From: Saccostrea cucullata
Lineage: Eukaryota
Assembly (NCBI RefSeq): GCF_032062105.1
Contig: NW_026938421.1
Span: 310,001-374,000 of the forward strand
Direction of reading: 5' to 3'
Length of the DNA stretch: 64,000 bases
Part shown: one piece after another, positions 29,256-34,093 of the stretch
Layout: every line of letters starts with the position of its first letter
Position numbering within the stretch: the first letter of the stretch is position 1
Notes under the pieces: model-generated
Seen by the model: only the letters and a program-made list of their open reading frames with translations
What the model was told of the DNA's origin: nothing
Databases searched by the model: none
Position numbers and translations under genes: made by a program

Positions 29256-32200
29256 TTAGGATTTGACTGGTGGGCGGAGATCAATATCGGGTCTGGCTGG
29301 ATCTGGGTACATTCCCCGGCTCTTGTAGTCAATAGTTGGACTGTAAAACTGTAATACAAAATAAAGCGCCTGTTCAGTTTATGACACCTTCTCTTCGTTT
29401 TCAGCCTACTTACACACAACTACTCTACAATGTAGTCATACTTTTTTCTATGTTCTATTAATTTTCACTGTGAGCAAGGTCACAATTTTTCTGCAAAAAT
29501 TTGTCACAGCTTACATAAAATGCATTTTGAAGATATACCCTGGTAACAAAAATACAAGAACTCTGCGTTATCAAATTCTCCTGGCTTCAGTGATTGAATT
29601 CAAATTGTAATTTGCTGAAATTATGACCCCATGGAAAACTTATTATCATTTGTTATAAAGTTTTTAAATCAAACACAGCATTAATGATACAGGATTTTTA
29701 AGGAGGCAATAAAATGGAGCCCTTATTCTCCAACCTCTGAAGAATCCTTAGGGGAGGAGGATTTCTTCAGAAAAGAAGGGGGTCCTTACTGCTTGATAGG
29801 GATTATAGGACATTCATAGCAATGTATAAAGCCTATTTCATAATCGTCTGTCCTGAATTGATACACTGTACCAATATTGCTGACTTACTTTGTACTGTAT
29901 ATTCTGAGGCATTTTCTCAAAAGGCTGGGGGTTGCTTGTGTGTCTCCACCTAAACAGAGTAAAGCACTTATTTTTTCACTAACATAAAACATACAGTAAA
30001 ATCTGTTTATAAATGCATTAAATTACATATAAATGTAGTCTTATCATATAATGATTATCTTAATAAATAAGTGTTCAGTGTAATCTTGACTGTGAACACT
30101 TTCTATTGAAATTAAATTACAAGAAATGACACATAAATTAAACTACTAAATTACTAATTAATTATCATAAACTGTAATACTGACCTTTGGAAGTTATGAT
30201 TATCATAATTTTAATCTCCAATGAAAACTTACGTGACATCGGGTGCTTTTCTGCCGAGTCTTTGGAGGTACCAAGTTGCTAGACCAAGGCCTAAAAAGGT
30301 ACAGGTCCATATAACCTGCATCTGTAAATAGAAATAAAATCATCTCACTGTAGTCTGTGCTCATGTGGTCAGTTTTAGTTATTTATGGTGTAGGTACACA
30401 TGTACTTATTTCAGTGTTAGTATTTACAAAAGATGGTTGAAAGGTAGAGATAATGTGCCTATCCTAAAAATGCTTTATTGTGGAACTTGGTGGGCATTTG
30501 AATTCCATGTCCATTAAGCCATATGTATGTGGCGGTCAGCCAGGTTCGATCACCAGTGGCCAGAATAGCTCAGTTGGTAGAGCACCTGACCTGAGTTTCA
30601 GGGGGCGGGGTTTGAATCCTGGTCTGGTCCACTGCATTTTCTCCTCTCCCGTTACATTTGGTGCCGTACGTGCCATGCCCTGGACTTGACGGGTGAAAGA
30701 GCTTCCAGGGATGAGCCTGGGTTGGGGTCTTTCGAGGGCCAAAGACCTTTAACAGGTTGGGCACAGTTCCTCTTTTCGGGGAAGTATTACTATAAAACGG
30801 GATTATTCCTCTTTTCAGTGATAAAAACATAACTGAATTCGGGAATTTTGTCATTTTTTTTAATAATGCCTCAAAACTATTTATTAAATTAAAAGTGCAT
30901 AAAAATACGATATGATGTGTTTGTTTAATCTTTATTAAACAAACCTTGCTGACTGAAAAATTCGGTCCTTCAGAGCTGCAGTCAAGAGTAAGACGAGATT
31001 TAATCATACGACATCAGGAGTATTCTTCAAATGGATGTGAAAATTTCCCTTAAAAGTATTTTATTATTTATTCAAAAACCGAAAACTTTCATAGCTTGGT
31101 TTCATGGAGGTGACATCCTTTGAAGGTGCATAGGAATTTAAACTCACATGCAGCAGTAATCCAAGACTTTTACTTTAATTTTCCCTGTTGATAAATGGAA
31201 CGAAGAGTATGGAATCTAATAAAGGCATTCATTTTAAAACCATTTTAAAAGAAGATCATTTGAAATTCAATATTTCAAATAAATATTGTCATCTGTAAAA
31301 GAAGAAGCAGTTTTTAAAATGATTTTCACGATGTCATTTATAGAAATAGTATAAAATAAAATTAGAACGAATAATTTCATGAACGAGTTAGCAAGTGCTG
31401 AACGTATTCAATCTCGTAATTTTAACATAGGCAGGGTTTGAAATTAACAGTCGCCCACTCGCAATTTGCGACCAATATTCTTTGTAGGCGACTTAAAATT
31501 ACGTTCAAGTAGCCCACATGGTGATTAAAAAATTTACGTTAATAAATATTTGTTTTCCAATTTTGTCCGAATGTTCCGTTTTTTTTTCTTAAAAAATTTC
31601 GTAATCATTAAAGTGCGTATATTTACCACTGAGAAGTATTTATACATAAAGTATCTGAGTGATTGTAACGGACAAAATCGGGCATCGACGCGTCAATGAG
31701 CCCAACAAACCAAAAAGTATATTGGTTGTATCTGTGAAAAAAACTGCCATGTGCTTGAATATATGATGTTTAATAACCATATAAATCTTCTTAAACAAAA
31801 ACTTCAAATTTAGATAAGTCATGCATAATATTTCTACGGATAGAAAAGAAACACGAAGCATATGTCGTGATATAATGAAAAAAAAAAAATAACGAAAAAT
31901 GAGGATGTTGTATTTTTATTCAATAGAAGGTGTGATAATTTGTGGGCGAATAAATTTTGATATGGGCCCCAGAATTGCAAGGTTTAGTAGCCCACATGGC
32001 TATCAAGGATTACAAGTTACCGGTAGTTTAAAACCCTGATAGTAAGCATCCGTAAGAAATCTATATCAAAGGAATATTTCACCACCCTTTTTCAGCTTTC
32101 TGCAGCAATCAGTATCGCATTTTTTGGCAAACATACACTTATTAGACAATAAATATTTAGAGGATGTGAAAATATTCTTGCACTTTATCTTTTATTCAAA

Positions 32201-34093
32201 ACAAACACGAGAATAGAGGCTACCAGAGTGAAAATTCCTGAATACAGTAATGTTTTTATTAGTACTGAAAAGAGTAATAGTTCCCTTTTATAGTAAAACT
32301 TCCCCCAAAAAGGAACTGTGACCAACCTGTTCAAGAAGGGAGGAATGTGGCGGTCAGCCATGCTTGATCGACGATGGCCAGATAGCTCAGTTGGTAGAGC
32401 ACCTACCCGGAGATTCAGGGGGCCCAGAGACGAATCTCGGTCTGGTCCACTGCATTTTTCTCCTCTCCTGTTACACTTGAATCTCCTTCACTCAAGATAC
32501 TTAGTTGCTTGGCAAATTGGCCCAGTGATTTTTGAAGTGAGAAGTCGAAAATGTGTAAAGTTTACAGATGGACAAATATAGACAGATGTACGCCGGAAAA
32601 ATATGACCAGACAAGCTTGCTTGAGCCTCCTGCTCAGAAGAGCTAATTGCTTAACTTTGTCTGGCCCTATAACAGGTCCAGTCCAAAGACTATTTCTACC
32701 TACGTAGCTATTAATAGCTATGTAGGTATTTAACCTACCCAAAGTAGCTATTTTAACCTATTTTCTGCTTTACTTGCATTTTGTGGCCAAACGCAGGAAC
32801 GGCGCAATATGGTGAGCACAAAATTTCCTAATACAGTCACATTGATGATGGATAGAACAAAAATTTAGCAACAAAATGATTACTTCGTGTATTATCAATT
32901 TGCATACAAACTAATGTAAAATTGCAGATTCAGGAAATAATCATTTTTTGGATAAAATTTTGTCGTATTCATCATAAGTGTGACTGTATCAAAAATATGG
33001 GATTCACCATGCTGTGCCGTTTGGTCTTTTGAGCACAAATTGCAGAAAATACAGAAAGTAGGTAAAAATAGCTACTTTGGGTAGGTTTAAATAGCTATGC
33101 GACGCTCGTAACTGCAAGCTCTAAGGCCAAAATAAAAAATACTCTTGTTTCCTGTCACCCGACCTACCCTACATTTTACCCTCCGACCCTAAAAGTTTTT
33201 ATTACATTTTCATTTTTTGGATAACTATTTTTCTAAAATACAGAAGTTGACCAATGATATTTACAGAATTAATACATCACAAGTGTACAGGTTACCTTTA
33301 CTTTATAAATCTTGATTAAGAAACTTGCTTTGTAAACTGTTAACATATCATTTTCTTGTTATTACATGCTATATGTTCTGCATTCATTATATTTTGAAAA
33401 TAAAATTTTCTCTCAAAATAAAATTTTTTCCCTACCTACCGACCCTAATTTTTTTTGTCAGGGGACAGGAAACAAGAGTATATTTTATTTTGGCCTAACG
33501 ACAACGCCTGGGCGAAGAGAAAATTCGGACTACCGCACATTCATTCCTTAGAATTTTTTGCCGCAGTAATTTTGACCCACAATGCATCACTTAGCAAAGT
33601 TGCGTTCTCGCGAGAATGACGGCAAATGTTCAACAAAAATTTTACTCGCCTTGATAAAATGGATACATATTGAAGATAAATTGTAAACGTAACTTTTTTC
33701 ATTAACTTTCAGCACTGATCAGTTTTTTTCTTGGTATTTGTAACTTTCATACGACGTCATGTGGCGTCAGAGTCTAGACGCACCAAATGTCACGTGTGGT
33801 TTGACGAGCCCGATCTAAATTAAAACAACAGAAGAGTTTGCGCTCGCTCTAACGCCAGTAACGGTCGCACCGTCAACATATTAGCTACGTAGGTAGAAAT
33901 AGTATTTGGACTGGACCTGTACAAGCCATACTGCCATAGTTGTTTAACCGGGTCCTAAAACAATGCTGAACATAAATGTAACATCTCAAAATCAATAAAT
34001 TGAAGTGTTTACCCCTTTGTGGTAGGAAACTTCCCTCCATCGCATACCATACATCCAGTTTTCTGGAGTAAGTTTATTAAAATCTATATGCAT
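29256..34093 (-). CDS. NDUFA4: NDUFA4/COXFA4-like cytochrome c oxidase subunit, 107 aa
   Basis: Exons 34013-34093, 30233-30321, 29889-29949, 29256-29348 give MHIDFNKLTPENWMYGMRWREVSYHKG|MQVIWTCTFLGLGLATWYLQRLGRKAPDVT|WRHTSNPQPFEKMPQNIQYK|FYSPTIDYKSRGMYPDPARPDIDLRPPVKS*. One TM helix plus the family motif YLxRL...PDVxW...NPxP...QYKFYS..DY. AATAAA at 29107-29112 (minus). Confidence 0.88.
30558..30630 (+). other. tRNA-like pseudogene cassette inside the 5' LTR (second copy ~32376-32447)
   Basis: Acceptor stem GGCCAGA/TCTGGTC, D arm TAGCTCAGTTGGTAGAGC, CCTGA/TCAGG stem with a non-canonical 8-nt loop, degenerate B box GTTTGAATCC, and a downstream TTTT. Confidence 0.75.
30753..32329. mobile_element. 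Non-autonomous DNA transposon with ~100-bp TIRs, inserted in the TRIM internal region
   Basis: CAGGTTGGGCACAGTTCC... versus ...GGAACTGTGACCAACCTG. Flanks TTAA and TTCA (degenerate TTAA TSD). Confidence 0.8.
31432..32038. mobile_element. CAGGG...CCCTG MITE (hAT-like, approximate 5-bp TSD) nested in the element above
   Basis: CAGGGTTTGAAATTA versus TAGTTTAAAACCCTG; flanks ATAGG and ATAGT. Confidence 0.65.
33098..33882 (+). mobile_element. HINE-like element related to 20651-21341 (5'-clipped)
   Basis: Shares GCGACGCTCGT...AAATTCGGA at the 5' end and TGCGCTCGC...AACGGTCGCACCGT..AACATATT at the 3' end. Confidence 0.7.
33125..33495. mobile_element. PIF/Harbinger-like MITE
   Basis: GGCCAAAATAAAAAATACTCTTGTTTCCTGTC inverted at the other end; TAA TSD. 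Confidence 0.85.

Follow-up and report, generated by a model that had tools for sequence, protein, structure and literature searches.

Helenus-1_SaGl was described in 2024 from the rock oyster Saccostrea glomerata and assigned to the Helenus group under the label 'TRIMp3' (Kojima, 2024, Biology 13:119, PMC10886601). For this family, a tRNA-like long terminal repeat (LTR), a primer binding site (PBS) for tRNA-His, a 4-bp target duplication and a Gypsy-type helper were recorded, and the published sizes are 129 bp for the LTR, 103 bp for the interior and 361 bp in total (Kojima, 2024). Members of another family, biv-TRIM, would be recognized by how closely they resemble its consensus sequence (Satovic et al., 2019, PMC6934838). 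In this study, we analyzed a window of 64,000 nucleotides of Saccostrea cucullata DNA, and we conclude with a probability of about 0.94 that a single, degenerate Helenus-1_SaGl element occupies 30528-32475. [quoted passage not shown] Since Helenus-1_SaGl is already known and published (Kojima, 2024), the element is not new. The 'Helenus-type TRIMs' that the first-pass annotation had named turned out to be exactly this family. Identity to the deposited consensus was judged by eye, letter for letter; in this comparison the 3' LTR and the interior of one genomic copy (L024:1269-1629) were identical to published Helenus-1_SaGl over 129 + 103 nt, and this copy is used here as the canonical one. The window copy is composed of the following features:

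30528-30656, + strand: 5' LTR, 129 bp, TGTGG...GTTACA, 92.3% identical to the canonical copy
30558-30630, + strand: tRNA-like unit of the 5' LTR (ARAGORN; Rfam tRNA at 30559-30629, 29.7 bits)
30657-30752, + strand: left internal part, ending in the left copy (TTTAA, 30748-30752) of the target duplication made by the nested transposon
[quoted passage not shown]
30753-32329: non-autonomous DNA transposon of 1577 bp, nested in the interior; its terminal inverted repeats (TIRs) are about 80-100 bp long and start with CAGGTTGGGCACAGTTCC
32330-32334: TTCAA, right copy of that duplication, one mismatch to TTTAA
32335-32345, + strand: polypurine tract GAAGGGAGGAA, end of the internal region, adjoining the 3' LTR
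32346-32475, + strand: 3' LTR, 130 bp, 86.9% identical to the canonical copy
32376-32448, + strand: tRNA-like unit of the 3' LTR (Rfam tRNA, 31.3 bits)
32476-32646, + strand: 3'-terminal fragment of another, very abundant repeat, outside the element, beginning exactly at the LTR end

Both direct repeats start with TGTGGCGG, end with GTTACA and have TG..CA ends. They had been estimated by eye as repeats of about 130 bp with 80-85% identity, and the computed value is 83.3% (110/132). The 5' LTR differs from the canonical copy at 10 positions, six of which are CpG transitions, and the 3' LTR at 17. For the more diverged 3' LTR, the genome holds no subfamily that is nearer in sequence, its best other match reaching 88%, and its differences are therefore private mutations. 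The proposed PBS for tRNA-His holds as well, since TGGTGCCGT fits the 3' end, including CCA, of a tRNA-His-GTG that was found in the genome itself (L032, L036; ending ...AATCCTGGTCACGGCA). With CCA added, complementarity extends over 9 nt in the window copy, whereas copies of the main subfamily reach 10 nt and a 356-bp subfamily (L004, L010) carries a perfect 19-nt PBS. In the window copy the PBS is interrupted by a 4-nt insertion following this remnant, which canonical copies do not have. The polypurine tract was likewise placed correctly, with AAGAAGGGAGGAA at 32333-32345 abutting the 3' LTR; in canonical and sister copies the tract reads AAGGAGGGAGGAA. After excision of the nested transposon and one copy of its duplication, an interior of 107 bp and an element of 366 bp (129 + 107 + 130) remain, close to the roughly 110 and 370 bp given before. 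This interior can be aligned to that of the canonical copy with 90.7% identity, and the only open reading frames in the element are spurious short ones. Thus, the architecture is that of a TRIM, with an LTR, a PBS, a polypurine tract and a second LTR around a short non-coding interior, and the length stays below the limit of about 1 kb for such elements.

Each LTR contains a tRNA-like unit of the Pol III type, as had been proposed. In the window, both units score just above the gathering score of the Rfam tRNA model (29), whereas the LTRs of the canonical copy reach 58.8 and 52.6 bits. Both window LTRs retain an intact A box, TAGCTCAGTTGG (30566-30577 in the 5' LTR). The B box is decayed in the 5' LTR (GGTTTGAATCC, 30609-30619) and destroyed in the 3' LTR; in canonical copies it is intact (GGTTCGAATCC). 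The units are followed by T runs, TTTT at 30637-30640 in the 5' LTR and TTTTT at 32455-32459 in the 3' LTR. Of the two units, ARAGORN called only that of the 5' LTR, with a 4-base anticodon, and such an anticodon was reported in all copies tested. A functional tRNA gene was considered and is ruled out by the 8-nt anticodon loop in every copy tested and by the more than 1000 copies; because of this loop, the unit is not a working tRNA despite the intact A and B boxes of the canonical copies. Downstream of the element, a match to MIR841 at 32810-33008 was dismissed as chance, as its score of 33 bits compares with a gathering score of 200 and the sequence there is a long, AT-rich inverted repeat.

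A tRNA-like cloverleaf with a T run downstream in each repeat, together with 4-bp flanking sequences that differ, would also be expected if the two repeats were independent tRNA-derived SINEs or tRNA pseudogenes lying 1.8 kb apart, and not the LTRs of one element. However, the other copies in the genome speak against this. A first-look search yielded 1027 candidates with the 5' repeat and 1128 with the 3' repeat; the genome therefore holds at least 1000 candidate copies, and the window repeats are not a matter of chance. Among 30 fetched loci the usual structure is an LTR of 129 bp, an interior of about 103 bp and a second LTR of 129 bp, with a length of 356-365 bp and typically 361 bp, so that the published sizes and the 4-bp duplication agree with the genomic copies. 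Arrays with three LTRs and solo LTRs are also present. The LTR pairs of genomic copies are up to 100% identical (129/129). Perfect 4-bp target duplications surround 12 of the 13 complete copies with two or three LTRs, and they were also seen around several arrays and around a solo LTR (TAGC). Thus, in sister copies the repeats are paired around the 103-bp interior with PBS and polypurine tract, and a single 4-bp duplication encloses the whole. The first-pass annotation had named SINE-like tails and a missing PBS or polypurine tract as signs of an ordinary SINE; the sister copies are instead bounded by TG..CA, carry both elements and have no poly(A). The repeats end without an A-rich or microsatellite tail, and among the genomic copies neither a SINE tail nor duplications of variable length were seen, with the terminal GTTACA directly next to the 4-bp duplication. 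Together with the alignment of the window interior, the genomic copies refute two independent insertions, which we regard as extremely improbable.

As one copy of Helenus-1_SaGl, the window element has clearly decayed. It differs from the published family in its eroded LTRs (92% and 87%), the 4-nt insertion in the PBS, the nested DNA transposon and the unmatched flanks. Five to seven of the 11 CpGs per LTR are lost, those of the B box included, and both B boxes are eroded because of this CpG decay. The TIRs of the nested transposon start with CAGGTTGGGCACAG, and the 5-bp duplication TTTAA/TTCAA refines its borders to 30753-32329, where 30753-32333 had been given. Its family comprises at least 217 first-look candidates, and other copies measure 730-1020 bp and are flanked by 5-bp duplications. 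With CpG loss, an insertion in the PBS, an interior split by 1.58 kb of foreign DNA and flanks that do not belong together, the window copy is dead, in line with the earlier description of an old and eroded copy.

The flanking 4-bp sequences, TGTA on the left and CTTG on the right, form no duplication and agree at only one of four positions, as already noted in the first-pass annotation. The missing duplication is peculiar to this rearranged copy, as the feature is present at the family level. It is missing because the sequence on the right belongs to another abundant repeat, of which only the end is present; in its other copies this repeat extends further upstream, and here it closes at its own normal 3' end with a hairpin and GAGCTAA. 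The left flank is single-copy, with one match in the assembly. An allelic or paralogous empty site was sought in the assembly via both flanks and none was found, because the left flank matches once and the right flank is a repeat. Most likely, two separate Helenus insertions recombined to give this copy, or the site underwent some other rearrangement. That two Helenus-1 insertions recombined unequally, deleting the DNA between them and joining the 5' flank of one copy to the 3' flank of the other, has about an even chance. By a hand estimate based on 17% LTR divergence, erosion alone would produce three or more mismatches in the duplication in about 2% of cases; the remainder of the truncated repeat is absent from the left side, and the unequally diverged LTRs have only two changes in common, both CpG transitions. 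However, the imbalance of 10 against 17 differences is statistically uncompelling, and neither a pre-recombination allele nor an orthologous locus turned up in the assembly, where the left flank matches once. Somewhat less probable, at about one chance in three, is a single old insertion whose right duplication was later separated or destroyed, either through a local deletion or by the arrival of a truncated piece of the abundant hairpin-ended repeat exactly where the LTR ends. The precise start of the fragment at 32476 and its normal 3' end fit such a history, and about 18 bp past the fragment end lies TGTC, one mismatch from the expected TGTA, but it demands an insertion exactly at the LTR boundary, and the fragment has no visible duplication of its own.

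The structure of the family points to copying in trans. The element consists of two 129-bp LTRs around a 103-bp interior with a tRNA-His PBS, a hairpin-rich spacer, a polypurine tract and little else. Its 4-bp duplications, its solo LTRs and its arrays of alternating LTRs and interiors (LTR-int-LTR-int-LTR) are hallmarks of an LTR retrotransposon whose reverse transcriptase and integrase act on it in trans. We infer a helper of the Ty3/Gypsy type. A candidate helper is a gag-bearing Ty3-type element (L074) with an 18-nt tRNA-His PBS, a 4-bp duplication, a polypurine tract ending in GGGGAGGAA and an LTR starting with TGTAAC. A tRNA-His-primed element of the BEL/Pao type with a DUF1759 gag (L075) was set aside as helper, its duplication being 5 bp long (TATCA). 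In the genome, autonomous elements with the same LTR ends as Helenus were not found.

Judged from the sequence, the tRNA-like unit of each LTR would supply a Pol III promoter; transcription of the genomic RNA would then begin in the 5' LTR at this unit, pass the weak T4 run there and terminate in the 3' LTR at its T run. In the literature, Pol III transcription of Helenus is likewise inferred (Kojima, 2024, PMC10886601). For expression, reads from three RNA-seq runs primed with oligo-dT, and a random-primed contig set, were placed on the canonical copy. Coverage by the oligo-dT runs, a type of library that misses Pol III RNA, was low and on both strands, and 61-70% of the placed reads run into unrelated flanks. 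In these four data sets, of which the oligo-dT ones are blind to Pol III RNA, no discrete transcript starts or ends were seen on the canonical copy. The high word depth of the contig run is about that expected from about 1000 genomic copies multiplied by the flank depth. Low coverage on both strands, with reads continuing into the flanks, is consistent with passive co-transcription; the RNA data do not support a separate transcript of the element and are no evidence against a Pol III RNA.

Some arrays are mixed. One consists of alternating Helenus-1 and Helenus-2 units with four LTRs and a single duplication, CACT (L009). A two-LTR element combines a Helenus-2-type 5' LTR with a Helenus-1 3' LTR within the duplication TATT (L025), and a three-LTR array contains interiors from different PBS subfamilies and LTRs differing by 1-2 nt within the duplication GAAA (L017). 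It is tempting to speculate, although we consider it rather unlikely, that some Helenus arrays arise while RNA is reverse-transcribed, when co-packaged RNAs from different families or subfamilies undergo additional strand transfers, and not by later unequal crossing-over. If true, Helenus-1 and Helenus-2 would have one packaging and helper system in common. Such a birth of arrays adds nothing about the window copy itself.

The main value of this analysis lies in annotation. In this oyster genome, more than 1000 tRNA-like matches are neither tRNA genes nor SINEs but LTRs of Helenus, and are to be masked as Helenus; the locus illustrates well how a copy looks after decay, nesting and rearrangement. 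The architecture of a TRIM with tRNA-like LTRs can be recognized correctly from sequence alone.

Compared with known systems, the window family resembles Helenus-1_SaGl in its tRNA-like LTR, its tRNA-His PBS and its polypurine tract. A comparison with Helenus entries had been suggested, and the LTR and interior of Helenus-1_SaGl are identical by eye to those of a genomic copy. The oyster sister families Helenus-2_SaGl and Helenus-2_CGi/2C_CGi agree with Helenus-1 in architecture, PBS and polypurine tract, have LTRs that are 78-82% similar over positions 31-129, and are found mixed with Helenus-1 units in arrays. They differ in the first 30 nt of the LTR, which begin with TGTAATGG... in these sister families and with TGTGGCGG... 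in Helenus-1; within the tRNA-like part, the anticodon arm and the T arm differ as well. The plant TRIM Cassandra (Kalendar, 2008, 2020) likewise carries a gene for a small RNA of the Pol III type in its LTR and forms tandem arrays and solo LTRs. However, the gene in Cassandra is 5S rRNA, its hosts are plants and its transcripts have been shown experimentally; an Rfam scan of 29500-33500 found tRNA only and no 5S rRNA. Finally, tRNA-derived SINEs (SINE2) have in common with Helenus a tRNA-like head with A and B boxes, a lack of coding capacity and a high copy number, but they are copied by LINEs, possess no LTRs, PBS or polypurine tract, and end in A-rich or simple-repeat tails with variable duplications.

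The two LTRs of the window element are 83.3% identical (110/132, global alignment), and both start with TGTGGCGG and end with GTTACA. The direct repeats, primer-binding site (PBS), polypurine tract, cloverleaves, A box and T runs described in the first-pass annotation were all correct on re-examination. The features of the element and of its right flank are as follows:

30528-30656, 5' LTR, direct repeat of 129 bp
30559-30629, tRNA-like part of the 5' LTR (Rfam tRNA model, 29.7 bits)
30659-30667, PBS TGGTGCCGT, 2 bases 3' of the first repeat
30748-30752, left duplication TTTAA, flanking the nested transposon
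30753-32329, nested non-autonomous DNA transposon, 1577 bp
32330-32334, right duplication TTCAA, flanking the nested transposon
32333-32345, polypurine tract AAGAAGGGAGGAA, abutting the 5' side of the second repeat
32346-32475, 3' LTR, direct repeat of 130 bp
32376-32448, tRNA-like part of the 3' LTR (Rfam tRNA model, 31.3 bits)
32476-32646, right-flank repeat, at least 1564 first-look candidates

Helenus elements are TRIMs with a tRNA-like LTR sequence, a PBS and a polypurine tract, they generate 4-bp duplications in animals, and 51 families were described in pteriomorph bivalves (Kojima, 2024; PMC10886601). Among these, Helenus-1_SaGl from Saccostrea glomerata has a 129-bp LTR, a 103-bp interior, a total of 361 bp and a 4-bp duplication (Table S1), and is placed under tRNA-His beside Gypsy-39_CGi (Figure S2C; PMC10886601). 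In a by-eye comparison, the 3' LTR and interior of the canonical genomic copy (L024:1269-1629) were identical to the published sequences over 129 + 103 nt. The source genome is therefore that of S. glomerata itself or of a species very near to it. The earlier reading as a Helenus-type TRIM was thus correct. Judged by sequence, the window element is a family-level member of the published and named Helenus-1_SaGl; the finding itself is already known and adds nothing beyond Kojima (2024).

Searches of the 1.17-Gb assembly gave 1027 (5' repeat as query) and 1128 (3' repeat) first-look candidates; these totals should not be taken for copy numbers. Among the 30 loci retrieved, the commonest layout was repeat-interior-repeat (356-365 bp). 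Arrays of three repeats (588-593 bp) occurred too, as did solo repeats, one with the duplication TAGC. A perfect 4-bp duplication flanks 12 of the 13 complete two- or three-repeat copies (CAAG, CACT, AATT, CATG, TATA, GGTA, GTTC, GAAA, CTAG, TATA, TGTA and CTTA; the exception is L030), and an A-rich or microsatellite tail was present in no copy among the loci fetched. SINE-like tails with variable duplications, the outcome set to refute the LTR-element proposal, are absent from these copies. The two LTRs of one copy (L004) agree at 129/129 positions and those of several others at 128/129, so Helenus-1 was active very recently. With LTR-PBS-polypurine tract-LTR anatomy, 4-bp duplications, solo LTRs and arrays all present in the genomic copies, Helenus-1 behaves as an integrase-inserted LTR element and not as a SINE.

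The proposed priming by tRNA-His was borne out against the genome's own tRNA-His-GTG genes (L032 and L036), located by pattern search and then ARAGORN. Their 3' end is ...AATCCTGGTCACGGCA, and the complement with CCA added is TGGTGCCGTGACCAGGATT. The 356-bp subfamily (L004, L010) carries an exact 19-nt PBS 2 nt past the LTR. Of this match, 10 nt remain in the main subfamily and 9 nt in the window copy, where a 4-nt insertion follows.

The tRNA model has a gathering score of 29. ARAGORN calls the unit of the first repeat with a 4-base anticodon; both window LTRs retain an intact A box, TAGCTCAGTTGG, and a T4 or T5 run lies 3' of each cloverleaf. The B box reads GGTTTGAATCC in the first repeat and is unrecognisable in the second. 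The degenerate B box reported earlier is thus real in the window LTRs but is no family trait: the model gives canonical LTRs 58.8 and 52.6 bits, and the degeneration is therefore decay of this copy. Identity to the canonical copy is 92.3% for the 5' LTR (CpG transitions account for 6 of 10 differences) and 86.9% for the 3' LTR, to which no subfamily in the genome search came closer than 88%. CpG counts fall from 11 per canonical LTR to 4 and 6, and the only two differences common to both window LTRs are CpG transitions. The anticodon loop has 8 nt even in canonical copies, in agreement with the published view that Helenus encodes no working tRNAs (Kojima, 2024; PMC10886601). A B-box-like, T-arm-like motif lies within 30 nt 5' of the Helenus-1 unit (window 30541-30554; CCGGGTTCGATCGCCGG in canonical copies, LTR positions 14-27); half of a second tRNA may survive in it. 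The corresponding place in Helenus-2 is taken by an unrelated hairpin.

A DNA transposon nested in the interior, as claimed in the first pass, was recovered with inverted ends (30747-30827 pairing with 32256-32335), 5-bp flanks and an uninterrupted target. The target minus the insert, GACC-TTTAA-GGAGGGAGGAA, exactly matches canonical Helenus-1 copies; once the insert and one copy of the duplication are taken out, the interior measures 107 bp and aligns at 90.7% with the canonical 103 bp. Only short, spurious ORFs are present. A genome search with its left end gave at least 217 first-look candidates. Complete sister copies measure 730-1020 bp, have inverted ends of ~100 bp, start with CAGGTTGGGCACAGTTCC and end with its complement, and are flanked by 5-bp A/T-rich duplications (TTAAA, TTTAC, TTGAT, ATTAA). 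At another locus (L006 and L022; G000:C12021:85675-90795), Helenus-1 LTRs lie ~5 kb apart with the common duplication CATG, a second case, after the window copy, of a large insertion in the short interior.

The outer flanks of the window copy do not match (TGTA against CTTG). The left flank (30250-30527) is single-copy in the genome search. The right-flank repeat elsewhere runs on upstream of the point where it starts here, and its missing part is absent from the element's other side. Such a truncation, at the very end of the LTR and with no remainder across the element, makes it improbable that the duplication was simply eroded; by our own estimate, at least 3/4 duplication mismatches at the observed divergence have a chance of ~2%. 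The preferred explanation, to which we give about even odds, is that two separate Helenus copies recombined. An insertion or deletion that fell precisely on the LTR boundary and destroyed the match is possible and rather less probable. The right-flank repeat consists of ~166-bp tandem units and then a unique 3' end (L058-L061) closing with a GC-rich hairpin and GAGCTAAAAA. It may represent a rolling-circle (Helitron/Helentron-type) non-autonomous element, akin to the satellite-carrying elements of this type reported in oysters. Several long AT-rich, MITE-like inverted repeats lie just downstream (32729-33090 and 33124-33496); the match of one of them to plant MIR841 is due to chance (33 bits versus a gathering score of 200).

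Helenus-1 would be mobilised in trans by a Ty3/Gypsy-type element. Two tRNA-His-primed elements were considered as helpers:

L074:1141-4864, short gag-only Ty3-like LTR element, ~3.7 kb, 18-nt PBS
L075:1364-4191, short gag-only BEL/Pao-like LTR element, 18-nt PBS

The L074 gag has a zinc knuckle and a Ty3-capsid match that is weak (E = 3.7e-5) and falls short of the curated cut-off; the copy examined has no other ORF of at least 250 aa. Its 707-bp LTRs start with TGTAAC, its polypurine tract ends with GGGGAGGAA and its duplication is the 4-bp ATAA; LTR start, tract and duplication resemble the Helenus ends. L075, with 207-bp LTRs and a 709-aa ORF (DUF1759 gag domain, CFAP58-like coiled coil), is a poorer fit owing to its 5-bp duplication TATCA. 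Neither shares the Helenus LTR ends, and the tRNA-His-primed LTR elements sampled yielded no helper with matching ends. Poly(A) RNA-seq, which is uninformative on the putative, non-polyadenylated Pol III RNA, gave low coverage of the canonical copy on both strands. No pile-up of read starts or ends was seen in these data, and 61-70% of the reads placed there run into unrelated flanks, which fits passive co-transcription of many copies.

Several arrays combine unlike units. L009:1273-2084 (minus strand) holds four LTRs alternating between Helenus-1 and Helenus-2 within a single duplication (CACT), L025:1275-1629 has a Helenus-2-type 5' LTR and a Helenus-1 3' LTR (TATT), L017:1042-1629 has three near-identical LTRs with interiors from two PBS subfamilies (GAAA), and L019:780-1960 is a longer mixed array. 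Unequal crossing-over within one element does not readily account for such arrays, which suggest template switching between co-packaged RNAs. For complex LTR insertions and Cassandra arrays, template switching in the course of reverse transcription was proposed earlier (PMC7215508). In two interiors, L009:1396-1498 and L009:1858-1951 (the same DNA as L029:941-1043 and L029:1403-1496), 13/13 and 12/15 substitutions relative to the canonical copy are A-to-G, and the adjacent Helenus-2-type LTR differs from its sister LTR by A-to-G changes only. This is the only A-to-G-rich locus among 81 distinct aligned copies. The substitutions resemble an ADAR-type hyper-editing footprint, left on a double-stranded RNA intermediate and made permanent by reverse transcription. 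In the Helenus paper there is no mention of mixed arrays or of editing (Kojima, 2024; PMC10886601).

Compared with Helenus-1_SaGl, the window copy falls short only in its duplication, for a locus-specific reason. tRNA-SINEs have solely the promoter-like head in common with Helenus. Cassandra is a functional analogue, whose LTR carries 5S where a tRNA-like unit is found here.
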